The notes under the pieces: generated by a model
Database searches by the model: none
The model's input: the letters and a program-made list of their open reading frames with translations, nothing else
What the model was told of the DNA's origin: nothing
Source of the DNA: Macrostomum hystrix
Taxonomy: Eukaryota > Animalia > Platyhelminthes
Length of the DNA: 64,000 nt
Assembly: GCA_950097015.1 (NCBI GenBank)
Contig: CATNEN010000003.1
Span: 6,572,001-6,636,000 of the forward strand
Direction of reading: 5' to 3'
Shown here: positions 45,941 through 60,073 of the stretch, one piece after another
How the letters are laid out: the number at the start of each line of letters is the position of its first letter
How positions within the stretch are numbered: the stretch's first letter is position 1
Position numbers and translations under genes: made by a program

Positions 45941-48737
45941 TCAGCAAGATACAAAATCTGGCTGCAGTAAGCTTTTAATGTCAAACTTTCTTTTTACTCT
46001 GCAATCGTAAAGAATAGACGGCAATGGATTGTCGCCTTCGCCGTCGCATTCGCCGTTGCCTTCGCCGCCACATTCGCCGTCGCATTCGCCTTCGCATTCG
46101 CCGTCGCCTTTGCCGTCGCCGTCTCCCTCGCCGTCGCATTCGCCTTTGTCTTCGCCATCGCCATCGCCAATGCCTTCGCCATCGCCTTCGCCGTCGCATT
46201 CGCCGTCGCCTTTGCCGTCGCCGTCTCCCTCGCCGTCGCATTCGCCTTTGTCTTCGCCATCGCCATCGCCAATGCCTTCGCCGTCGCATTCGCCGTCGCC
46301 TTTGCCGTCGCCTTCGCCGTCGCATTCGCCGTCGCATTCGCGGTCGCATTCGCCGTCGACTTTGCCGTCGCCTTCGCCGTCGCATTCGCCATTGCCATCG
46401 CTATCGCCAATTCCTTCGCCGACGCCTTCGCCGTTGCCCCTAAAACCGATGCCATTTTTCATCGCCCTCGCCGTCTTCATCGCCGTCGCCCTCGCCGTCG
46501 CGTCATTCCGCATCGCCCTGGGCGCCTTTCGCTGCGCTCGGTGACGCAAAAAATCGCCGCGCTGAAAGTCGGCTCGATTCGCCGGATGCACCGACCAGTA
46601 GTGACCCTTGCCGCTCTCCGAACGACCTATCGTCAACGACACAAAAGTGCACTTCAACTTGCACTTTCAATAGTATAAAGTACAAAGCCATAACAATCAA
46701 TCCTTACCCATCTTCACAAAGCAGTCGTTGAGTGACAGATTGTGCCGGACGGAATTCTTCCAACCTGGACTTCGGCTACGAAAGTTGGGATAATTGTCCA
46801 GAATCCATTGGTAAATATCGCCGAGAACAAGTCGTTCATCCTTCGAGCTGAGTATAGCCATAGCAATTAATCCTGGCATTAATTTGAGATTTTAAGAATG
46901 CAACATTTAGGAGTGATACGATAGGTCAGGAATGGATCGAGAGTGGGTCAAATGATGGGTCAAAGGATGGGTCAAATGATGGGTCAAAGGATGGGTCAAA
47001 GGATGGGTCAAAGGATGGGTCAAAGGATGAGTCAAATGATGGGTCAAAGGATGGGTCAAATGATGGGTCAAAGGATGGGTCAAATGATGGGTCAAAGGAT
47101 GGGTCAAAGGATGGGTCAAAGGATGGGTCAAAGAATGGGTCGAGAATGTGTCAAATGATGGGTCGAGAATGGGTCGAGAATGGGTCAAAGTACGGAGATA
47201 AAATAATGGGTCAAATGATGGGTCGTAAATGAGTCAGAAATAGGTCGAGAATGTGTCAGAAATAGGTCGAGAATGTGTCAGACATAGGTCGAGAATGTGT
47301 CAGAAATAGGTCGAGAATGTGTCAGACATAGGTCGAGAATGTGTCAGAAATAGGTCGAGAATGTGTCAGACATAGGTCGAGAATGTGTCAGACATAGGTC
47401 GAGAATGTGTCAGACATAGGTCGAGAATGTGTCAGACATAGGTCGAGAATGTGTCAGAAATAGGTCGAGAATGTGTCAGAAATGGGTCGAGAATGTGTCA
47501 GAAATGGGTCGAGCAGTGTTATCAAAAAAGAAGCCGAAGACAAGAGTTTGCTAGATAAGAATGCCAAATGTCTAGATTTCTGTGACAGAAAGATCCGTCT
47601 ACAAAGGCAGAAGTTAAGATGTCGTGAGCAGGTACAGCTAACAACTTGATTTAATCTGTCTCATTGTGTTGCGACAATTTTTTTCTTCAAGTTACTTTGC
47701 AACAAAACTCAATTTCTACTAGCTAGTCGCAACTGAAAGTCGGGTTCTCAAATTACAATTGTTGGTCTTTGTTTCAATAAATGGCGTGCGATGTCTTCAA
47801 ATAAAAAAATGATCGTTGTTAAGCTAAGCCAACACTGGCACAACACTGGACTCTATTGACAGGTAAAAACAATTATGCAGATTGTGTTCATGTCTAGATT
47901 GCATCAACAAAGAAGGGCTGGTTGGGTTAGATGAGCTGTTATCAATATTCGGCATCGATATAATTTCGTGTAATAACTCAGATTAGAAAGTCACGCGAGA
48001 GACATTGTAAATTTTGAGTCCCGGGCTGTCACTACAAACGTGAGCAACAATTTTTAGCCGTGGGCAGTTGCGTCACGTTAAAATCTTACAGGACAAAGAA
48101 TTGGAGAACAGCTAAACATGCAGTTCTGTTTAGATTTCAAATATAACTGTTATTTGTTATATTTTCAAAAGTGAGTGTCTAAGTTTTGATTTAGAATAAT
48201 TTTACAGTGCTTGACAATTTGACAGAAATATAAAAACTTTACAATGATAATGAGATTGAGAATGAGATTGAGGATGAGAATGAGAACGAGAATGAGATTG
48301 AGAATGAGATTGAGGATGAGAATGAGGATGAGAATGAGAATTAGATTGAGAATGAGATTGAGAATGAGATTGAGGATGAGAATGAGAATGAGATTGAGAA
48401 TGAGATTGAGAATGAGAATGAGAACGAGAATGAGAATGAGATTGAGAATGAGAATGAGACAGCTTCACTCACCAATGTAGCTATGATTAGGTTTTTCATA
48501 CTTCCTGCACTGCACCTGTGGCAGCAGAAGCGGTCGAGCTGTCACATATGATGCGGCTTCAAGACCTGTGCAAATGATTGGCATTTGAATTGGCCACTGA
48601 TGCAGCAGCAGCCACTGCATCTGATGATCTGCATTGAAAAGGCTGAACATCTTTATTGCCATAGGATGATTGTCACTTGCGATCCGTGATTTTATAGATT
48701 GCAGTGGGCAAGCAACACGAACTAGCACCGTGCTCAT
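45941..48737 (-). CDS. FoxQ2: Forkhead transcription factor FoxQ2, divergent paralog b, ~371 aa; complement(join(45941-46626,46708-46872,48473-48737))
   Basis: [88 protein letters not shown]; same two phase-1 introns and 165-nt middle exon as paralog a; C-terminal FDIKSLL. Start codon uncertain. Confidence 0.9.
46940..47515. repeat. Compound repeat: 12 bp (ATGGGTCAAAGG) then 22 bp (AATAGGTCGAGAATGTGTCAGA)
   Basis: FoxQ2b intron 1; the 12-mer family also occurs at 51140-51540. Confidence 0.93.
48245..48460. repeat. (GAGAAT/GAGATT)n hexamer repeat
   Basis: Starts about 12 nt inside the FoxQ2b intron 1 donor. Confidence 0.93.
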
Positions 48738-49006
48738 TGGCTGTCACTAAAAGTTCTCTCTAGATTAGTGAATTATCCTAACAATGGCTTAAAAGTTGAA
48801 AGATCACGGTGATATTTCCAATACTGACTGCCATTTTAGCAGTGAAAATTGAAATTTTATGAGCAAAAAATGATGCCCATACTGGTGATTCTTGTCACTA
48901 GCCGCCTAGGAGAATCGTTGAATATCTCGACGATGTTTTTTGATTCTGTTGTTCTTGATTTTCATTGCGGCTGGTTGAATATAGTTTGGGAGATACAGAA
49001 AAAAAA

Positions 49007-49140
49007 TGGTCTAACGCACCAAGGTCCTGAGTTCGATTCCGCTGCGAGGCCACATTCATTTGGCGCGCAGCCGCGGAGAGAAGGCTTGGGGGCTTGTCGT
49101 GCAATTGACGCCCTTGAGGGCCAACCTCCAAGGCACATGA
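49007..49140 (+). mobile_element. SINE family A, partial copy
   Basis: B box GAGTTCGATTCC followed by GCGAGGCCACATT...GCAGCCGCGGAGAGAAGGCTTGGGGGCTTGTCGTGCAATT...GAGGGCCAACCTCCAAGGCACA. Confidence 0.85.
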
Positions 49141-49654
49141 GAATTGTGTAAAATGCGGTAGAAATGACTGGCTTTAATTATTTAAGTGATTTTAATTATT
49201 TAGTTTAAAACAATTGCTTAAGTGAATGAGCCAATGTTTTAAGCTAAAATGTTTATTTACTAAAAAAAATTTTTAACAGATAAAAATAGGGAATAAAATA
49301 ATTTTTGCATTGTCAAAAATGGGCTGTGATTTGTTTTTTTGTATATTTTTAGAACTAATCCAAGTTTCAACGATGCTAAGCATACTACTATCGACAAGCA
49401 AAAATACAAACGAATAAGTAGTGTACAACGAAAGTTAAAACAACATTTTTAAATGACAGACCAAAAATGAATAAATTTTATCGGATTTCAGATTGTCTGT
49501 GCCGTTAACAGATAAAACATTTTGAGAGTAAAGATTAAAGGATTAAAAATGGTATAATCTGCAGCTTTAGTACGAGCTAGAAAAAATTGTCTATGTTCTG
49601 ATTTTCAGAAAAATAACTGCCCAATTAAACTGAAAACTAATAAAAACGGCGTAG

Positions 49655-50285
49655 GAATCAGCCATAGAAGAAACTCCCGAGGAAACTGCCCAGACAGCGA
49701 TGGAAGAAACTGCCGAGGAAAATGCCCAAAAACCCATTGAAGAAACTGCCAAGGAAACTGCCGAGGAAGCGATAGAAGAAACTGTCGAGGAAGCCATGGA
49801 AGAAACTGCCGAGGAAACTGCCCAAGTAGCCATAGAAGAAACTGCCGAGGAAACTGCCCAAGTAGCCATAGAAGAAACTGCCGAGGAAACTGCCCAGACA
49901 GCGATAGAAGAAACTGCCGAGGAAGCGATGGAAGAAACTGCCAAGGAAACTGCCCAGAAAGCCATACAAGAAACTGCCGAGGAAACTGCCCAGAAAGCCA
50001 TACAAAAAACTGCCGAGGAAACTGCCGAGGAAGCGATTGAAGAAACTGCCGAGGAAACTGCCGAGGAAGCGATGGAAGAAACTGCCAAGGAAACTGCCAA
50101 GAAAGCCATAGAAGAAACAACTGAGGAAACTGCCCTGGTACCCATGGAAGAAACAGACGAAGAATCTGCCCAAGTAGCCATAGAAGAAGCTGCCGAGGAA
50201 ACTGCCGAGGAAACTGCCCAGGAAACTGCCGAGGAAACTGCCCAAAAAACCATAGACCCCATAGAAGAAACAGCCGAGTCAATAA
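49655..50285. repeat. 12-nt-based degenerate repeat (GAGGAAACTGCC), open as a Glu/Thr/Ala-rich ORF on the plus strand
   Basis: Variation keeps codon phase; lies just past the TRP gene stop. Confidence 0.8.
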
Positions 50286-50321
50286 TCCAGCGAAATTTCA
50301 GTAGGAAACGCAGCAATGGGG

Positions 50322-53300
50322 TCATCCCGGATAATCCAGAGCGGATTGAAAGTGGCTGCCGATGCTGTTCCTGTTCGAGCTAACAGCGGCTTCGTCGTCA
50401 GATGAGCCGCTCGGTGGCTGAACCTGCAGCTGATAATTTGGCGGCGGCACCTGCGGCAGAGTCGGCGACGACTGGTGCTGCTGCTGCTGCTGCATCTTGA
50501 GAATCTGTTCCATCAGATGACGCAACTCCTGAACCTGCTGATCCAACGAAGTGAGTCGCTGCTCAACCCGATGCAGCTGAGGCTGCTGCTGTTTAGTATC
50601 GCCGGAGCTGTTAGACGATGGCTGAACAGCTTCGGCAGTTTCCGTGAAATTTCTGGCCCTATTAGCTTTGACCAGGCCAAGGTAAAGCTCGGCCCGTTTA
50701 GGTCTGAGGGCCACCGCCTGTACAGCCAGGAAGTAGACAAATTTGAGCACGATTGACTCTTTCCTGGCTCCTCGCAGACGACGGAGAACTGTGGCTCGAT
50801 GACGCGCCAGGCGGGTGTTTCTAAGAAATCGCGGCGCCCTCAGATGTCGCAGCAATAGTCCACCGGCCTGCAGGATGTTCAACGGTGGCGGCAGAGCCAG
50901 ACGACGTTGAAATTCTTCGACAGTGTAGTGACGACTGTAGTACCTGCGATGTTCATTGGTCATTTATGAGTCAGAGAATGGGTCAATGATGGGTCAGGAA
51001 GATTGAATCGAGAATACATCAAGGAATATGTAAGGAATCGGTTACGAATGGGGGTGAGTGGCAGAGTGGTTTAACACGTTTGCCTCTCGCACCAAAGTGC
51101 CTGAGCTCGATTCCGCGGCGAGGCCACATTTATCAAATACTGGGTCAAAGAAAGGGTCAAAGAATGGGTCAATGAATGGGTGAAAGAATGGGTCAAAGAT
51201 GGGTCAAGGATGAGTCAAGTATGGGTCAAAAACTGGGTCAAAGAAAGGGTAAAAAATGGGTCAATGAACGGGTCAAAGAATGGGTTTTAGAATGGGTTAA
51301 AGAATGGGTCAATGAATGGGTTAAAGAATGGGTCAATGAATGGGTTAATGAATGGGTCAAAGAGTGGGTCAATGAATGGGTCAAAGAGTGGGTCAAAGAA
51401 TTGGTCCACGAATGGGTCAATGAATGGGTCAATGAATGGGTCAAGGATGGGTCAAGGATGAGCCAAGGATGGGTCAATTGATGGGTCAATGAATGGGTCA
51501 ATGAATGGGTCAAGAAATGGTCAAGGAAGGATTAAGGATGGACTCATCCCTACTCACCACACGGAAGTGCTATTTCCATGGATCTGGTCCACAGTTTTGC
51601 TAAACAGCGCAATCAGCAGGTTCAACAGAAGCACATTGGTCACCAGAATGAACAAAAAGTTCAACGCTGTTGGCACCAATATTCGTCCAATCTCGTGCGG
51701 ACATCCCCCCTCTTCGCAGGCCAGTCCTTTGAGCTCTTCAACAAAGAACTCGCCGACCGTGATGTAGAAAGCCTTCTCGATCAGGTTGATCCAGACTCGT
51801 TGCATAGCCCAGCGACTGTTGTGAAGATCCTGGCAGGTTGTGTTTCCATCGGCCACCGGGGCGGCTTTCAACTGGAAGAAGCCGTTTGGATAGAGCAGCG
51901 ACTGCAGCGAGACGCCGAACGCGGCCATGAAGATGCCGAGTACAAGTAGGAAAGGCAGCAAATCGGTGACCAGCATTTCGCAGATCATGCGAATTTTTGG
52001 TCCGATAGCTTTGAAAATCACGGCGTAGAATAGTAGGCGACAGTACAGTAGGAACAGGCAGATGCAGTAGAGCACTCTGATCCAATAGTACCTGCTGTCA
52101 ACGAAGTCTGGTACACAGGAGAGCCGCTCAACCTGTACAGGTGGGATTTAAGTCATGTGTGCTTTTGCTGCGTGTCAGAGAAGATCGTCATGGGTGTCAG
52201 AGAAGATCGTCATGGGTGTCAGAGAAGATCGTTATGGGTGAGAGAAGATCATCATGGGTGTCAGAGAAGATCGTCATGGGTGTCAGAGAAGATCGTCATG
52301 GGTGTCAGAGAAGATCGTCGTGGGTGTCAGAGAAGATCGTCGTGGGTGTCAGAGAAGATCGTTATGGGTGTCAGAGAAGATCGTTATGGGTGTCAGAGAA
52401 GATCGTTATGGGTGTCAGAGAAGATCGTCATGGGTGTCAGAGAAGACCGTTATGGGTGTCAGAGAAGATCGTTATGGGTGTCAGAGAAGATCGTTATGGG
52501 TGTCAGAGAAGATCGTCGTGGGTGTCAGAGAAGATCGTCGTGGGTGCCAGAGAAGATCGTTATGAGTGTCAGAGAAGATCGTTATGGGTGTCAGAGAAGA
52601 TCGTTATGGGTGTCAGAGAAGATCGTCGTGGGTGTCAGAGAAGATCGTCGTGGGTGCCAGAGAAGCCGACAGCACAGCCGCAGCTATTGCGCGGCGCATC
52701 TGAAGGCTGCGTACGGCTGTTCAGTCCATGGACAGTGGGGACGCCACACCCACCCTTAATTACCCCAGCTGATGCTGGTACCCATTTAACAGCTGGGTGA
52801 ACTGAAGTAATGCAGAGTTCAATTGTCTGAAGTGTCACGAATTATACCAGGGGAATCGGGAATCGAACCCCCGACCTTCAAGTTGTGAGTCGGACGTTTT
52901 AACCACGAGGCTACAACCGCCGCAAGGATTGTAGGTTGTAGATTCTAGTGATTTCTAGCCAAGAAGAACAGCTGTCTCACCTCTTCTCCCGTAGTCAAAT
53001 CCAGTCCCAGCTTCGCAAAGAATCCCAGATAAAACAGTCCAATACTGGCCAGATCCATCACATTCCACATGTCGCCCAGGTACACCAGCACACTCTTGCA
53101 GTTCCGGCACTCGATCACTTCTTCGACAACTAGGCCGACGAACCAAACGGCAATGACAGTATCCAGGCGGTTTAGTCGCGAATGGAAGTGAAACAGCACA
53201 GTGCCAGTTAAGAGGGCCAAGAGCACCAGGTGGGACAGCAGGTGGTACTGAAACTTGACAGACGGTGAGCAGAGAAACTGGCAAAGTCGGACAACCGCTC

Positions 53301-56300
53301 GACGTACATCCGACCAGTTGTTGTTGCACGTGTCCTCGCAGTGATCGAGCTCGTCTAGCAGCTCTTCGAGGGCGTTGTTGGCGCTTCGATCGTCCAGGAT
53401 GCGACTGTTGACTCGACCGCCACTGCCGCCGCCGCCGCTCTCGGCCGAATGACGATGATCTCGATGATGATGCGGATGCCGGTGGCTGCCCAGGTTGCCG
53501 CGCGAACCACTGATGGACGGCGGATCCTCTTCGTTGCCAGCTTCGTCGTCAGAGACTTCTTCGTCGTCGATCGGTTTGAAAACTTTCTCTTCTTGCTTGT
53601 GTTGCTGATTCTGATGACGAAATGGAAAGTCGGTTATTTTAGAAAATCCTTTTGAACGAGAGAATCCCACAGAATGAAACATTGGGCCCACTAACCTCAG
53701 CCTCCGTCTCCGTCACCGTATCGACGTTCTGTCGCCGAAGTCGCTCCTCTTTCTGATGACGCCGATGCTTCATCCATAGCTCTTTGTTCTCCGCAGCCGC
53801 AGCCGCCGCAGCTCCTAGTCGACGCTCTCGTCGCTGTTCCTGACGTCGCCTGTCCAGCTTGACTACGGCGTAGAACGTCAGGACGTTCAACAGAGGCAGC
53901 AGACCAACAGCGATCAATAACTGTCTGTTGAGCGCACAAGCCGGTGTTCTCATCTTGTCCGGCCCTATCGACTCAAAATAATCGCCAAACCAGTCTTTGT
54001 CTAGAGCATCCTGGCAGCAGGCCAATGATAGAAAGTTGCCGCACTTGGCCACTGCGGCCAGGGAGACGACGCTGTGATTGCCGAACGGGGTTAGCTTGTA
54101 CCGGATGAAGTCGCACGTTACCGTCTTTCGTCTTGAGCGATCATTGATGAACACCTCCTGCAGCGCCGCCTTCAACAGCTGCTCCATGGAGTCGGCTCGT
54201 TCTTCCAGGCCTTCGCGAACACCCGTGGTGATGATTGACAGCTGACAGAGGCTGCGAAGCACTTTGACAGCGTACAGGCCCAACGGAATCGTGTCGAACT
54301 GTCGCATGCAGAGGTTCAGAAAGCTGCGCTGATACCTGCGGATATTTTTCCTTTTTTTATTTGGCTCCATAGTTGCGAATCGCTCTACTGTAAGTAGGCT
54401 AGTTAGTTTAATTGAATCGTCTCATTGAACGATAGGCACTAGAACACTCAACTAGATTAGGGGGAGATTTATTAGCCAACGTCAGTGTCTGCAGGATGTG
54501 AATCACCAATCAATAATTTGATCGTCGATATACTCGTAGAAATGAGAAATTACGGAAGTCGTGTCAATAAATCTAATCCACACAAATGACTTACTAGAAA
54601 GTCTGTACGAGAAAACAGAACCATTGTTATGTGAGTTTCACATTAGCCAACATTGTAAATATTGACTTGATCGGCGGAGTGCTTTCGGCGTGTTTATCAG
54701 ACTCATCAAAGACCAGACCTGATCAAATAGCCATTTGATCTGGCAGTGGAGAATGAACCTGCTATTTGACTTCTGGTATTAAACTACGAGGCTGTCCTTT
54801 TGTGCAGCTATTATGCTCAGAAAATATTAAAGGACTCGACAATATTGTTTATACTCACTACTCCCCTGTCTCATACCCTGACTTATTTCTCCCGTATCCC
54901 ATCTCTCCCGTGTCTCATCTTTCCCGTGTCTCATCTCTCCCCTGTCTCATCTCTCCCCTGTCTCATCTCTCCCCGGTCTTATCTCTCCCGTGTCTCATCT
55001 CTCCCCTGTCTTATCTCTCCCCTGTCTCATCTCTCCCCTGTCTCATCTCTCCCCTGTCTCATCTCTCCCGTGTCTTTACCTTCGATTATGTGTAGATGTC
55101 AGGGATCTATCTAAACGAAACAATTCAGTGTGAAAGTCGATCTAAGTTATGTGGCAATAATTAGGCCATAGTTCTCAAATTCAAAATAGAAAATCCCTCT
55201 AACTCACTTCCCAGTGACGACTGTGTACACAATGTACGTTCTTATCGGATTGAGAAAGATTCTAAACTGGTTGACCTGGCACAGCCTGACATCGGGTTCG
55301 GCAGTTTCAATGCCAGTTAGCTTGGCTAGGAAAGCTTGCAGACTGCGCCAGAATGAGGCCTCGTCAATGAAGTCCAGTTGCTCTCGGACGTATGTCCACA
55401 CGCCCTGGCCATTCTCTTCGCACTCTTTGTACAGGGTGAACAGGTAGTTTCGCTCAATTCGTTGCGTAATGTCCACCGGTGTGACGTCGCCCATGACGTG
55501 CATGAGGACTTGCATCAGGTCGAAGTTCTCGTCGATGTAGGCCTTCTTAATAAAGAGCTCCATGAATTTCTGACCAGATTCGCCCTCCATCAGCTTTCTG
55601 CTCAGGCAGAATTCCGGCATTTGACGCATTAGTTCGAGAAATTTCTTCAGATTCTGCTCGTTGATGCAATCCTCCAGTGCTTTGATGCTGAAGGCCTGGC
55701 GAACTGTCTCGCTGGTGTGATGCCGTTGAATAAGACCCAGCCGTCTGAGCTCCTGAATGATGAGCAGGAAGCTGCGGCCTGTGTTGTCAATCATCTTGAG
55801 CATCTCGAAGACGTCACGAACCAAGCAGGGCTGAGCCTTGGGCGATCCAGTTTGCTGAGGCTCTTCGCGATCCGGACAGGCGTTTTTCACGTCGTCCGGA
55901 CGACGAAAAATTCGCACCAATTTAAACTGGAAGATTCGGTGCAGCAGCAGCGCATTGTTGCTCTCCAGAAGCAGGTCAAGGGGCCGAATCTGAAATAATT
56001 TGCGTCATTTTAATTGCGTCATTTACAGTGGAACAAACAATTTTAACTGCGAAGTCACCGAGTGAATGCATGCCCAGCTGGCCTGCATCTGGCGCTGCTT
56101 GGTCTGTTTCCTCTCTGACCAGCTCGCGACCTCACCGGCCGCGCGCGTACTTTGAATGGGCTTTCTCTCCCCCGTCAGGGATGATTCATCACCTCTCTGT
56201 CCCGCGGTGGTCCTTCTTTGTTCCCTCGTTCTCTCGTCTGACGTCAGCCATAACATGTTTCATCTCACGTGACTGAGAACGCGGCCTCACCGCGTAATCG

Positions 56301-59010
56301 AGCTCAGGAACCTTGGTCTCTTTATTCGTCTTTAAAGTACACTGAAACATGTTTTCTGCACTGGGTGCTTAAATTATGAGCCAGGACCTACTTTGGAGTG
56401 ACGTTTGCGTGCCACTGACGTCAGTTGCTATTTTTAGATACCACGTGATTCAATCACGTGCTTTCTAGCTTAGCGCTGGGGGGAGGCCCTCGACTATGAA
56501 AAAGCACCACTTCTCTCACCCTCCTCACTGCACTGGTCGTCGTTATGTTTCTAGGCTGGGCCCCAAATAGATGTGGTCTCTTAACACATGCTTCTATCCT
56601 AATATTTCACCTACCTCTTTGAAGTCCGAATCGTACAAGCTGACCGAATGTCTCAGCAGGAACAGTACCGACTCGTTGAGCTCTCGTTCCACGCAGGCGT
56701 GCATCAGCGTTCGGCCGTCCGAGTCGCGCGAACCGAAGTGTCTGACGGACCAATCCGGCTCTGCCTGTAGCAGAATTTCTGCAGTTTCTGTACTCTCTAC
56801 TAGAAGAGCTCGATCGATTGGAGCTTGATTGGCGTCGTCCAGAACTGCCGCCTTTGCGCCGTGTTCCAGCAGCAGAAGCACCGTCTTCTTGCAGACCATT
56901 GTTAGTCGACCCGACGCGTAGTGAAGCGGAGTGCGACCTCTGCGAGTTGGTTTTTTAATTTAACATGTCTAGATTATCTTTGAAAAATGTTTATGACGTC
57001 GGTTCAAAGGTGGTCCATAGGTGTTTATTGGCGTACATAGGTGTCCATATTTCCTGGAGGGCTGTTGGAAATGGCACATCATTTGGTGACACTAGACCCG
57101 CAGCCAGCGAGGAGGCAATTCTGCCCACTTCGCTGACTCCTGAGCACACACGCACACAGATACCGTGAGGAGGCACACGCTCACACAGGTGTGTACATCT
57201 GCCCTGACTTTCTCATCGTCAGGCAGTGTACACTCTCACTGTGCCTTGGAGGTTGGCCCTCAAAGGCCTAAATTGCATGACAAGCCCCCAAGCCTTCTCT
57301 CCTCGGCTGCGCCCCAAATTAATGTGGCCTCGCCGCGGAATCGAGCTCAGGGACCTTGATACCTGAGTCGTAACCTATCTGCCACCCAACCATAGTTAAT
57401 TAATTTCTAGGAAACGTGTCTCAATTACTTTCTGATGAGAGTTCCTAACATCTTTCCCAAATGAAATCAATTTTTAATTTACACCGTCTGTCTAGTCTTC
57501 TTTTCAGATTGAAATGAGTCTAAACGAAATTAATCTATCACACCTGGGACTAATTCCCATATTGGGATTTAACGCCCAAGAAAGATTGAATCTCAAATCC
57601 TAAATTAATGACGACTCTGCAAATCCTATTTCAACTAGTATAGGTTGTCGGTTTTAGCCTAATGGTTCGACCATCGCTCGTAGACCATCGACCATAGACT
57701 ATTGACAGACCTTTTTGACATCTTCAGCTGTTGACTCAAGGACAAAGCCAAAAAACTGGCTGTTTGACTTACAAGAATAGACAAGAGGCACTTCTTATGG
57801 GACTGAAATTCGAAATCTGGAGGCATTGCTTGACACTGTAAAGTGCAAAAGATGATCAGCAGCAAAGGGGATCGGGTCAAACTGCCTGATGGATTAATCA
57901 ACGATTTGTTTGCGAAGCAATTTTTGGCTCTGTTGACTGATGGGATGGAATGGAAGAGCAAAAATACATCAAACGTAGAGTTCAAGGATAGAATAAACAT
58001 ACTGTACTAGAAATTTGTTTAAGCATGAGTTTGAAATTATTCACGAACTCGTATATTTTATTCCGTTGACAATATTTAAATCTGTTGAAAATCATCTACT
58101 TCATTAACAAAGGATAAATTCGTTAAATATGCTTAAATAGTCATCAAGAGTGTTAACTATAACTCCTTCCTTTAAATATGAAAAAAAATTTAAAATAACT
58201 ACGGGAAAATCGTTAACTATGGCTAATTACGTTAACTTTAGTAAATCCGTTAATTGAGGGTAAATACTTAAATTATGGATAAAACCGTTAACTATAGATA
58301 TAAACGTTAACTATGGATATAACCGTTAGCTATAGATATAAACGTTAACTTTGGATATAACCGTTAGCTATGGATATAACCGTTAACTATAGACATAAAC
58401 GTTAACTATAGGAAAATCCTTTAACTACGCGAAAATCGTTAATAATGGATAAATCCGTTAAGTATGGGTAAATCCGTTAACTATGGGTAAATCCGTTAAC
58501 TATGGGTAAATCCGTTAACTATAGGAAAATCCTTTAACTACGCGAAAATCCGTTAACTATGGGTAAATCTGTTAATCATGAGTAACTCTGTGACTATGAC
58601 TACACATAGACATCAAATGTATTAACCAACATGGTTAATTACTGTAGCTTAGGTAAATCCGTTAATTGTGGGCAAATCCACATAACTATGGATCATTCCG
58701 TAAACTTAAGTACACAGCCATTAGTAGAATATCAAGATTATCTCAACGTTCCCCAATTTGAACAGGGAATTGTTACCATGGCAACCGCTATAGCTCACTT
58801 CTTATCAGTCACATTGGGATCAGCTCCCCGTTCCACCAGCAGGTACTCCAGCAGTTGGTTGCGGCTGTGCAACGCCAGAATGTGCAGACCGCGACGTCCG
58901 CAATTGCCGCACAGGGGTCCGTCGACTCCGACGTCCTTCAACACGGCGTCGATTTCAGCTCGACTGCCGGACACAAAATTTGCAGCTCGTCGCTCGCAAT
59001 TGTTGGCCAT
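50322..59010 (-). CDS. TRPM/TRPS-like cation channel with N-terminal ankyrin repeats, ~1261 aa; complement(join(50322-50943,51558-52132,52981-53610,53696-54335,55208-55989,56615-56939,58799-59010))
   Basis: Six GT-AG introns with matching phases (2,0,2,0,0,2); 3786 nt = 1262 codons. Ankyrin motifs GADPNVTDKKGRTPLHYA and DSDGRTLMHAC; MHR4-like NPIRTYIVYTVVTGK..LGLYAVKVLRSL; FLCSPSVKF before S1; DMWNVMDL; IGPKIRMI S4-S5 linker; pore FYITVGEF; S6 NVLLLNLLIALFS; TRP helix WYYSRH..LPPPLNIL; coiled coil. An acceptor AG abuts the ATG at 59010, so upstream exons are possible. Confidence 0.88.
51049..51133 (+). mobile_element. SINE family A, tRNA-like head only
   Basis: GGGGTGAGTGGCAGAGTGGTTTAACACGTTTGCCTCTC...GAGCTCGATTCCGCGGCGAGGCCACATTTAT. 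Confidence 0.85.
51140..51540. repeat. 12 bp repeat (ATGGGTCAATGA)
   Basis: Last TRP intron. Confidence 0.9.
52172..52665. repeat. Minisatellite, 22 bp unit (GTCAGAGAAGATCGTTATGGGT)
   Basis: TRP intron 5, abutting the tail of SINE B. Confidence 0.95.
52668..52920 (-). mobile_element. tRNA-derived SINE family B with CORE-like central domain
   Basis: Minus strand: A box TAGCCTCGTGG, B box GGTTCGATTCC, then CAGTTCACCCAGCTGTTAAATGGGTACC, resembling the conserved central motif of invertebrate CORE-type SINEs. Single copy in the window. Confidence 0.8.
54865..55075. repeat. Minisatellite, 15 bp unit (TGTCTCATCTCTCCC)
   Basis: Same family as 29770-30460. Confidence 0.92.
56282..56317 (-). mobile_element. 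SINE family A B-box fragment
   Basis: Minus ACCAAGGTTCCTGAGCTCGATTACGCGGTGAGGCC matches the head of the other copies. Confidence 0.65.
57052..57391 (-). mobile_element. tRNA-derived SINE family A, longest copy (~340 nt)
   Basis: Head GGTGGCAGATAGGTTA...GAGCTCGATTCCGCGGCGAGGCCACATT, full hairpin-rich body, and 3' part shared with 3225-3465. Confidence 0.88.
58280..58600. repeat. Degenerate 19 bp repeat (CCGTTAACTATGGGTAAAT)
   Basis: TRP intron 1. Confidence 0.85.
58772..58785. promoter_or_regulatory. RFX X-box (GTTACCATGGCAAC)
   Basis: Full match to the GTNRCC-N(0-3)-RGYAAC consensus, near-palindromic, 13 nt inside the first coding intron of the TRP gene. Confidence 0.65.
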
Positions 59011-59971
59011 CTAATGAAAAATTATTCCCCCAATATAGTTAAACTGAATAAGAGCGTGTAATGAAGTATTGTAACTGCTGTTTGAGTCTGTAGAATTTAT
59101 AATTTGCTGTGTATATAAATATACACGTATTTCAGCAGCACACACACACACTTGGGGCAGGTAACCCGAAAGAAAGCACAGCGATTCGCTTGACCAATCA
59201 AATGTCAGCAGCTAATGTAGGGCATTTTTGTAAACCTACCCGATTATATTCTCGTACCTGCAGGGGACCCGGTTAAATATTAGTGAGTACGTTATTATCT
59301 TCAGCTGTTTAATTCATTCTCAATTTCAGCCTAATTTCTCACCTAAAAGCTGCTGCTATTTTATTATATTATGACCAAACAGGAAAGAGCGATTAATTAA
59401 CGCTGGTGTATATTGTGAGTTTACTACTCAACGTTTGTGTGTTCGTATAATAACGAAGAACGAATCAAAAGTATATACATAAAAATGCTTTGACCATTTA
59501 ATTATACGATTAGTTTAATCAGAAGATCAAATCAACGGAATGACAAATGAGGTCAATTATTCCTGATAAGGCAGTTGTCTTAGTTTAGACGGTATTTTAA
59601 TCTGTCAAAGGAACTGTAGTTTTTCTACACACACACACAGCGCAAACTGATAAGACTTATACGAGAATTTGTTTGAATGATTCTTTGATTTTAATTAAAT
59701 CCTACAAAGGCTGCAAATCAATAAAACCGAGAACAGTATCACCAATATAAAACTGTCAAGCCTTTGTACTTTAACCATTAACCCGCTAGCTAGGAACACA
59801 GTAAGTTTGCATGATTATATTCAGCAAAACGTTGGGGCAACGTTTCCAGTACGTAGCAAACACTTCAGAGTGATAACTCTGTGTAGCCTATTAGTTAAAC
59901 AATTTTGTTTGAATCAGTCGTCCAATTGTTAACCAATCGCCATCAAAAGTCTGAATAATGGCTCAAATTTT

Positions 59972-60073
59972 CCACTCTATCCGATGAGACAACTTTCAGA
60001 ATCACAAAACATCGGCATCGTCGAGATAGTCAACGATTCTTGACGGAGTGTCTGGTGGCAAAAAGCATCAATT
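59972..60073 (+). repeat. Unclassified dispersed repeat, copy 2
   Basis: Aligns by eye to 2068-2170. Confidence 0.7.

Follow-up and report, generated by a model that had tools for sequence, protein, structure and literature searches.

The window analysed here is a stretch of 64,000 nucleotides of the flatworm Macrostomum hystrix (contig CATNEN010000003.1, positions 6,572,001 to 6,636,000), and all coordinates below count from its first letter. The frame listing of the window contains, on the minus strand of region 50322-59075, seven exons (E1 to E7) that are open and in phase. They encode a predicted channel protein combining N-terminal ankyrin repeats (ANK) with a TRPM-type transmembrane region (S1-S6). 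The open reading frames (ORFs) of the exons remain open over about 3.8 kb in total and are bordered by canonical splice sites. An in-frame stop codon (59011-59013) is located immediately upstream from the ATG (59010). In the following list and in the text, slashes within pairs of coordinates or peptide motifs mark splice junctions.

Exon 1, 58799..59075, minus strand: 5' untranslated region (59011-59075), ATG (59010), and first ankyrin repeat (58801-58899); based on contig ends at 59019-59075 in four runs, the donor joint at 58799, and Pfam Ank/Ank_5 matches.
Exon 2, 56615..56939, minus strand: ankyrin repeats 2-4, with motifs GRTPLHYA (56834-56938) and DGRTLMHA (56636-56719); both joints seen in contigs.
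Exon 3, 55206..55989, minus strand: post-ankyrin helical region, MHR3-like part; joints seen in contigs.
Exon 4, 53696..54333, minus strand: MHR4-like region followed by a basic/Ala-rich linker, with CCQDALDKDWFG at 53984-54019 as the counterpart of the TRPM motif CQ.LL..IW.G; joints seen in contigs.
Exon 5, 52981..53610, minus strand: acidic/His-rich linker, pre-S1, S1 with a His-His pair (53203-53265), S2 with EEVIE (53110-53148), and S3 with WNVMD (53017-53070); acceptor 53610 seen in contigs, predicted 3' boundary 52981 (alternative 52970).
Exon 6, 51558..52132, minus strand: S3-S4 loop, S4 with CRLLF (52016-52057), S4-S5 linker with GPKIRMICEML, S5, pore helix and filter with AFYITVGEF (51731-51772), and S6 (51593-51655); predicted 5' boundary 52132 or 52126 (alternatives 52094 and 52091).
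Exon 7, 50322..50943, minus strand: TRP helix W/YYSRHYTVEEF...LPPPLNIL (50871-50942), coiled-coil heptads, poly-Q, and stop codon (50322-50324); predicted acceptor.

Splicing of the seven-exon gene

Logan contigs from four public runs, three from one study (X2-X4) and the fourth from another (X1), were aligned to positions 53500-59400. The contigs contained the joints 58799/56939, 56615/55989, 55206/54333, and 53696/53610, and each skipped intron was GT..AG on the minus strand. The cut at 55206/54333 could be 2 nucleotides off. A single contig of 1325 nucleotides covered E3-E2-E1, and further contigs joined E3 to E4 and E4 to E5, extending 981-1175 nucleotides past 53500, which is long enough for E6 and probably for E7. 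Contig depth was zero over unique intron sequence, and a single copy of E6 with 100% identity was detected in the 220-Mb assembly, at the window locus. The joined form is therefore derived from RNA rather than from a retrocopy. No joint was found upstream from the contig ends (59019-59075) in any of the four runs. Thus, the window locus is an expressed seven-exon gene, with the ankyrin and channel exons in one transcript. Two points detract from this conclusion. The records of the runs do not list them as RNA, and the E5/E6 and E6/E7 junctions, which are both located outside the stretch 53500-59400, have no read support.

An initial annotation, made from the sequence alone, had proposed seven in-phase exons encoding about 1261 residues. 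The junctions DKK/GRTPLHYA, DFKE/IRPLDLL, and VTGK/YQRSF of this model, as well as the boundary at 53696, were recovered at the same positions in the spliced contigs. The fourth junction proposed, SVW/YYSRH (E6/E7, 51558/50943), follows from the sequence rather than from reads, as the sole in-phase GT/AG pair restoring the TRP-box tryptophan. For E5/E6, four in-phase options exist, among which the family motif F-x-D-x-x-W/Y-Y (W or Y being alternatives) favors 52981/52126 or 52981/52132. The coding sequence comprises 1251-1261 codons across the in-phase options and 1259-1261 with the homology-favored junctions, in agreement with the size originally proposed.

The model might also have fused an ankyrin-repeat gene with a neighboring TRPM gene truncated at its N-terminus, as no single read or contig covers all seven exons and assembled contigs can be chimeric. 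This is extremely unlikely, since the contigs joining E1-E2-E3, E3-E4, and E4-E5 overlap by 267-674 nucleotides with identical sequence, E2, E3, and E4 align in the same order with the profile of the protein family described below, and the same architecture is present in uninterrupted ORFs of paralogues.

Domain order and paralogues in the same genome

The exons were searched singly; where a whole protein was required for searches or folding, intronless paralogues were used as proxies. E1 and E2 encode Pfam ankyrin repeats, approximately 4-5 in number (for E2, Ank_2 with an E value of 2.9e-10 and Ank with 4.6e-08), close to the four counted initially. In the PDB, E5 matched the TRPM2 chanzyme of a choanoflagellate best (8srj, E = 3.2e-14), ahead of further entries for TRPM2 and TRPM8. 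The best match of E6 was NvTRPM2 from Nematostella (6co7, E = 4.9e-14), followed by TRPM4/5/8/1/3/2, with TRPV2 reached only at an E value of 2.7e-07. In E7, the sequence itself shows four heptads with an a/d pattern (50493-50576) and then poly-Q, and Pfam matches to coiled coils were weak. In tblastn searches, E4 reached six paralogues with E values down to 2e-16 and E7 reached the C-termini of paralogues (E = 4e-06), the latter exon aligning to the TRP domain of the family. Matches to the family profile were collinear: 131-220 for E2 (E = 4e-12), 273-463 for E3 (2e-13), and 471-639 for E4 (7.5e-41). Pfam revealed no SLOG, NUDT9H, or kinase domain in the window exons, and none of the 46 matches of the SLOG profile PF18139 in the 220-Mb genome was on the contig of the window.

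In comparison to a classical TRPM channel, the window gene lacks SLOG/MHR1-2, has MHR3/MHR4 before S1 as judged through its family, and possesses TRPM-type S1-S6, the Ca2+-site residues, and the TRP helix. In order, the modules are canonical ankyrin repeats, an MHR3/4-type helical domain, TRPM-type S1-S6, a TRP helix, and, at the C-terminal side, a short coiled coil; SLOG, NUDT9H, and kinase domains are all absent. Each of these modules, and the absence of NUDT9-H and kinase domains, had been recognized in the initial annotation. The linker between MHR4 and S1 also contains a His-rich low-complexity insert (53449-53484, HRHPHHHRDHRH), and a much longer one (HGHGHG/DDHHDE, where the slash separates two motifs) is present at residues ~640-760 of paralogue L012. 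These inserts are possible metal-binding or pH-sensing segments.

The pore exon retrieved many paralogues in the assembly, including five complete intronless ORFs (1115-1192 residues) and a sixth ORF (L016, 1054 residues) interrupted by an intron. All six ORFs encode several ankyrin repeats and PF25508, the 'TRPM2-like domain' corresponding to the MHR region, without SLOG. Ion_trans was above threshold in two of the six. A seventh locus (L028) displays the same combination of Ank and PF25508 without SLOG. The ANK/MHR/channel architecture is therefore independent of the splicing argument, since it is present in uninterrupted ORFs. In at least 14 loci, the match includes the family-specific stretch immediately behind the ankyrins, and in a few others it begins further along the profile. 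A home-made hidden Markov model for ankyrin repeats fell short of Pfam in sensitivity, overlooking P0131, and provided a rough tally only. The homologue search with a full-length paralogue was flooded by generic ankyrin proteins, and a region-restricted search was used instead. One of the paralogues (L015) is located on the contig of the window, only ~46 kb away.

Ankyrin-type TRPM-like loci: L011-L016 and L028; C1 at 2.376 and 2.383 Mb; C11 at 2.126 Mb; C39 at 2.62 Mb; C38 at 22.46 Mb; C31 at 2.90 Mb; and others.

Comparison of the post-ankyrin region of the family with 20 SLOG-bearing TRPMs by hhalign gave a probability of 100% (E = 9e-83), and the alignment ran without a break across MHR4, S1-S6, and the TRP domain. 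In an AlphaFold model of the N-terminus of a paralogue, the first ~250 residues formed an ankyrin solenoid. The post-ankyrin part was refolded alone, because Foldseek with the 622-residue model comprising ankyrins and MHR returned ankyrin proteins only. The 364 post-ankyrin residues of paralogue L011 folded with a predicted local distance difference test score of 85.9 and a predicted template-modeling score of 0.81. The top 50 PDB entries matching this fold were all TRPM1-8, with Z scores of 15-18.2 over 250-298 residues, and the match started at TRPM residue ~390-420, which is the start of MHR3. The profile matches and the modeled fold identify the region encoded by E3 and E4 as a predicted MHR3/MHR4-type region, with ankyrins where MHR1/2 would sit, as the initial annotation had suggested.

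The window gene has six introns, whereas several paralogues have none. Minisatellites are present in four of these introns and just downstream from the stop codon.

Minisatellites: 49659-50256, 51133-51528, 52172-52665, 54876-55075, and 58196-58575; units of 12, 22, 16, 19, and 36/72 nucleotides, the 22-nucleotide array comprising 22.5 copies with 94% identity.
ORF over the array downstream from the stop, 49700-50383, plus strand: acidic EETAEE repeats, overlapping the end of the channel coding sequence.
Intronic dispersed repeats: 57046-57439 and 54879-55075, with similar translated fragments at ~48850-49150, 51058-51183, and 56457-56606.

Thousands of run contigs stack on the intronic dispersed repeats, with a summed depth of up to ~165,000, many variants, and rearranged joints. 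The repeats resemble a high-copy element of the short interspersed nuclear element (SINE) type and a microsatellite. An Rfam scan of 48500-60000 revealed no RNA family.

Relation to TRPM_MCLZ and to other TRP channels

A profile of the post-ankyrin part was built from five paralogues and searched against 1.84 billion representatives. The matches comprised ankyrin proteins from Macrostomum lignano, then trematode and cestode proteins of ~1380 residues with Ank and Ion_trans, and then SLOG-TRPMs. In the 1380-residue cluster from Schistosoma, H827, H831, Y864, E868, R943, H946, Y1038, and Y1117 were all found, i.e. eight of eight published residues at the published numbers, which identifies this cluster as TRPM_MCLZ, the target of meclonazepam. 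The orthologues of TRPM_MCLZ were the first full-length matches outside Macrostomum (1e-98), and all contained Ank and Ion_trans.

TRPM_MCLZ is a Ca2+-permeable, meclonazepam-activated channel of Schistosoma mansoni. The N-terminus of Sm.TRPM_MCLZ (Smp_333650) was reported to consist of 'ankyrin-like repeats' (PMC10788528), and the protein has no NH2-terminal MHR1/2 or SLOG domain, ankyrin modules being present in their place (PMC11731825). The group has been labeled 'TRPM-like', clusters beside TRPMs, and comprises 63 orthologues in parasitic flatworms (PMC12861061). The His pair of S1, H827 and H831, was reported in no other schistosome TRPM, and H831 and R943 are invariant in the 63 orthologues (Rohr et al., PMC12861061). 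Position 946 in S4 sets meclonazepam sensitivity, with His in S. mansoni and Phe in insensitive cestode orthologues. Thus, the ANK/TRPM-like architecture is not new, descriptions of it having been available since 2023. The premise of the initial annotation that TRPM-type channels lack TPLH-type N-terminal ankyrins is outdated (PMC10788528, PMC11731825, PMC12861061), and the subfamily that it considered possibly undescribed had already been published as the TRPM_MCLZ type. No paper was found on an expansion of ankyrin-type TRPM-like channels in free-living flatworms.

Two trees were computed. The first spanned MHR4 to TRP in 76 rows, with three exons of the window gene entered as separate rows. 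Forty-two SLOG-TRPMs formed one clade (support of 98), and all three window rows fell outside it, with the ankyrin-type proteins. The second tree, obtained by a quick search on S1-TRP, was rooted on TRPN-like proteins, one of them verified as a NOMPC orthologue, and contained no named TRPS, TRPC, TRPA, or TRPV. The TRPN rows separated with a support of 99, and 28 SLOG-TRPMs from several phyla formed a clade (95), outside which all window exon rows again lay. The ankyrin-type clade, with a value of 94 in the Shimodaira-Hasegawa-like approximate likelihood ratio test (SH-aLRT), contained the E6 row of the window gene, the Macrostomum paralogues, the TRPM_MCLZ orthologues, and a second, divergent ankyrin-rich group. 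In the trees, the distance between paralogues and their M. lignano partners was 0.07-0.15 substitutions per site, which identifies the genome as that of a Macrostomum closely related to M. lignano. The closest single-exon identity of the window gene was to a SLOG-TRPM (P0142, 44%).

N-terminal ankyrins are typical of TRPN, TRPA, and TRPC channels, and weak matches to TRPV2 and TRPC3 were obtained in the PDB, raising the possibility that the gene encodes a channel of that type with a pore merely resembling TRPM. There is very little chance that this is so. TRPM entries were ahead in both PDB searches (E5 and E6) by approximately seven or more orders of magnitude, the family has the MHR3/4 fold and the Pfam TRPM2-like domain, the TRPN-like rows including the verified NOMPC orthologue separate, and the window gene contains only ~4-5 repeats. 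TRPN/NOMPC and TRPA1 share with it canonical N-terminal ankyrins upstream from a six-transmembrane TRP pore, but possess 17-29 repeats, lack MHR3/4, and belong to another pore clade (99).

None of the three observations that the initial annotation had named in advance as contrary was made. The ankyrin and channel exons do not belong to separate transcripts, as overlapping spliced contigs join both. No upstream SLOG exon was found, with no SLOG on the contig, an in-frame stop before the ATG, and no upstream joint. The channel domain is not within TRPN, since it groups beside TRPM and the family has a Pfam TRPM2-like (MHR) match.

Canonical TRPMs (TRPM2/4/5/8 and the Nematostella and choanoflagellate TRPM2) share with the window gene the MHR3/MHR4 fold, S1-S6, the S2/S3 Ca2+-site positions, the TRP helix, and the C-terminal coiled coil, and they are the best PDB matches for both sequence and fold. 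In contrast, the window gene has no SLOG (MHR1/2) or NUDT9H, carries TPLH-type ankyrins instead, and lies outside the SLOG-TRPM clade. TRPS channels (soromelastatin, ced-11-like), compared by domains alone, are also TRPM relatives with a divergent TRP domain, but have SLOG and Nudix and no ankyrin repeats (PMC7306681), the window gene being opposite on all three. TRPM_MCLZ is possibly in the same clade as the window gene, as judged by the E6 row, beside the SLOG-TRPMs, and shares with it N-terminal ankyrins instead of SLOG/MHR1-2, TRPM-type S1-S6 followed by a TRP helix, the absence of NUDT9H and kinase domains, the S1 His-His pair, the S2 Glu, the S4 Arg, and the pore Tyr.

Differences between the window gene and TRPM_MCLZ are nonetheless evident. 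Parasites have one TRPM_MCLZ gene of ~1380 codons in three exons, with orthologues spanning trematodes, cestodes, and monogeneans, whereas the window gene belongs to a large expansion in Macrostomum, is a paralogue rather than a one-to-one orthologue, and has seven exons, 1251-1261 codons, and fewer repeats. It encodes Leu at the position of Y864 and Phe at the drug-determining position H946, and its TRP box is divergent. The Phe at the position of Y1117 is as published for Gyrodactylus. Function has been tested for the schistosome channel only. Strict orthology to TRPM_MCLZ was rejected, as the parasite orthologues form their own clade (support values of 100 and 99) without Macrostomum rows, in addition to Phe946 and Leu864.

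Alignment to TRPM_MCLZ gave H, H, L, E, R, F, Y, and F in the window gene at positions 827, 831, 864, 868, 943, 946, 1038, and 1117, respectively. The two S1 His positions are occupied by N/Y or A/H in the SLOG-TRPMs sampled. At the Ca2+-site positions of TRPMs, the window gene has E..E in S2, versus E..Q in TRPMs, and N..D in S3.

Several observations weigh against placing the window gene in this family and against its predicted function. E3 and E4 alone had no match in Pfam or the PDB, so that the MHR assignment is based on homology to the paralogues. Among the members seen, the window gene diverges most (~30-35% identity to paralogues), and no close M. lignano orthologue was present among the proteins retrieved. 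Its exon rows are on long branches (1.6-2.5), the positions of the E4 and E5 rows are not fixed, and the value of 94 for the ankyrin-type clade comes from the quick tree only. The TRP box is unusual (WYYSRHY versus WQFERY), and one glycine of the GFG motif, invariant in the family, is replaced by Ala. That the protein works as a channel, its selectivity for ions, its dependence on Ca2+, and its insensitivity to the drug are also inferred rather than observed. Taking these points into account, we consider it very likely that the window gene is a divergent member of the flatworm family of ankyrin-bearing TRPM-like channels typified by TRPM_MCLZ.

The long branches, the odd TRP box, and the GFG to AFG change, together with the ankyrin region, shorter than that of the paralogues, and the lack of a close orthologue among the proteins found, might alternatively point to a decaying or non-channel paralogue, transcribed but without a working pore. 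This appears improbable, because the seven exons are open in phase over their ~3.8 kb, canonical splice sites are used in four runs, and S1-S6, the pocket residues, and the WN..D, GPK, pore FY..VGE, and LPPP motifs are all kept.

As a member of the TRPM_MCLZ-type family, the window protein is predicted to form a tetrameric non-selective cation channel, with the C-terminal heptads (50493-50576) as a putative coiled coil. The ankyrin solenoid would take the peripheral cytosolic place of the ADP-ribose-binding SLOG (MHR1/2), and ADP-ribose would not be sensed via SLOG or NUDT9H. The S1-S4 cavity may provide the ligand and Ca2+ site, and gating would probably occur through this cavity, since the S1 His-His pair, S2 Glu, and S4 Arg of the TRPM_MCLZ ligand pocket are kept together with the Ca2+-site positions. 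The channel is probably insensitive to meclonazepam because Phe occupies the drug-determining S4 position, as in insensitive cestodes.

Origin of the ankyrin N-terminus and significance

Approximately 20 SLOG-TRPM loci are present in the genome alongside the ankyrin-type loci. SLOG-bearing TRPM tandem triplets, with a spacing of ~18-24 kb, were observed on C38 (1.210-1.259 Mb) and C7 (9.399-9.438 Mb), so that expansion is under way in both TRPM types.

The second group mentioned above is far more divergent and consists of long intronless ankyrin-rich channel ORFs, in which Pfam detects only Ank, with or without Ion_trans. It forms its own clade (99) inside the ankyrin-type side of the tree. 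For two of these ORFs (L020 and L024), the pore matched TRPM best in the PDB, and matches to NOMPC or TRPA1 covered the ankyrins only. These ORFs were considered as an outgroup and dropped, as their pores match TRPM best and they fall inside the ankyrin-type clade; the TRPN-like proteins were used instead. No description of this group was found in the literature.

Second-group ORFs: L018, 2783-7825, plus strand; L020, 3671-7444, plus strand; L021, 6188-9838, minus strand; L022, 6408-9344, minus strand; L024, 5663-9724, minus strand; L025, 6680-9478, minus strand.
Second-group open frames: C1 at 137676 (3108 residues) and C5 at 5986417 (2574 residues); range of the group 933-3108 residues.

The initial annotation stated that the SLOG module had been lost or replaced. 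The absence of SLOG was borne out, but the direction of the change was not, since the trees fit replacement or ancestral ankyrins. The sister position of the ankyrin-type clade fits SLOG replacement with fast divergence, retention of ancestral ankyrins, or long-branch displacement. Some flatworm TRPMs carry an ankyrin pair together with an intact SLOG, a possible intermediate between canonical TRPMs and the ankyrin-only type. In the Clonorchis sinensis 'TRPM2' (P0153), Ank_2 (63-119) is located upstream from LSDAT_euk (293-519), and in M. lignano P0334, ANK (175-198) is located upstream from SLOG (349-577).

Ankyrin repeats have been described as absent from TRPM and TRPS in a data set without Platyhelminthes, and the remaining group-1 TRP families generally possess them (PMC7306681). 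The ankyrin-type channels might be an old, separate family beside TRPM (and TRPS), one that retained its ankyrin N-terminus from the ancestor and, as sampled, survives in flatworms only. This would amount to a further TRP family, with the window gene as one of its members. With the TRPN outgroup, the ankyrin-type clade does not nest among flatworm TRPMs but is the sister group of all 28 SLOG-TRPMs sampled, and the SLOG label requires a single change on either tree. However, all named members are Platyhelminthes, and an origin before the sampled phyla radiated, and all the more one predating the choanoflagellate split, requires loss in each of the other lineages sampled. Sequence evolution is fast in flatworms, long-branch displacement being a standard artefact, and the SH-aLRT value of 94 was obtained by a quick search on a tree without named TRPS, TRPC, TRPA, and TRPV. 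MHR3/4, common with TRPM, must already have been present in the shared ancestor. We therefore consider an ancient sister family possible but rather unlikely. If true, it would contradict the published 'ankyrin-free TRPS-TRPM ancestor' and would comprise dozens of mostly intronless Macrostomum genes, the second ankyrin-rich group among them, with the window gene as an intron-rich, fast-evolving member; this radiation might then serve as a lineage-specific repertoire of sensory receptors.

As a divergent member of the family typified by TRPM_MCLZ, a validated anthelmintic target whose published orthologue survey covers parasitic flatworms (PMC12861061), the window gene bears on whether ankyrins were really lost before the split of TRPM and TRPS. 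The design combining ankyrins, MHR3-4, and a TRPM pore is present in a free-living flatworm, where it has expanded to at least 14 loci, and the S1 His-His signature of the pocket predates parasitism. The Macrostomum paralogues offer natural sequence variation for the study of the ligand pocket, and these free-living, genetically tractable relatives are a place to seek the natural stimulus of the channels.

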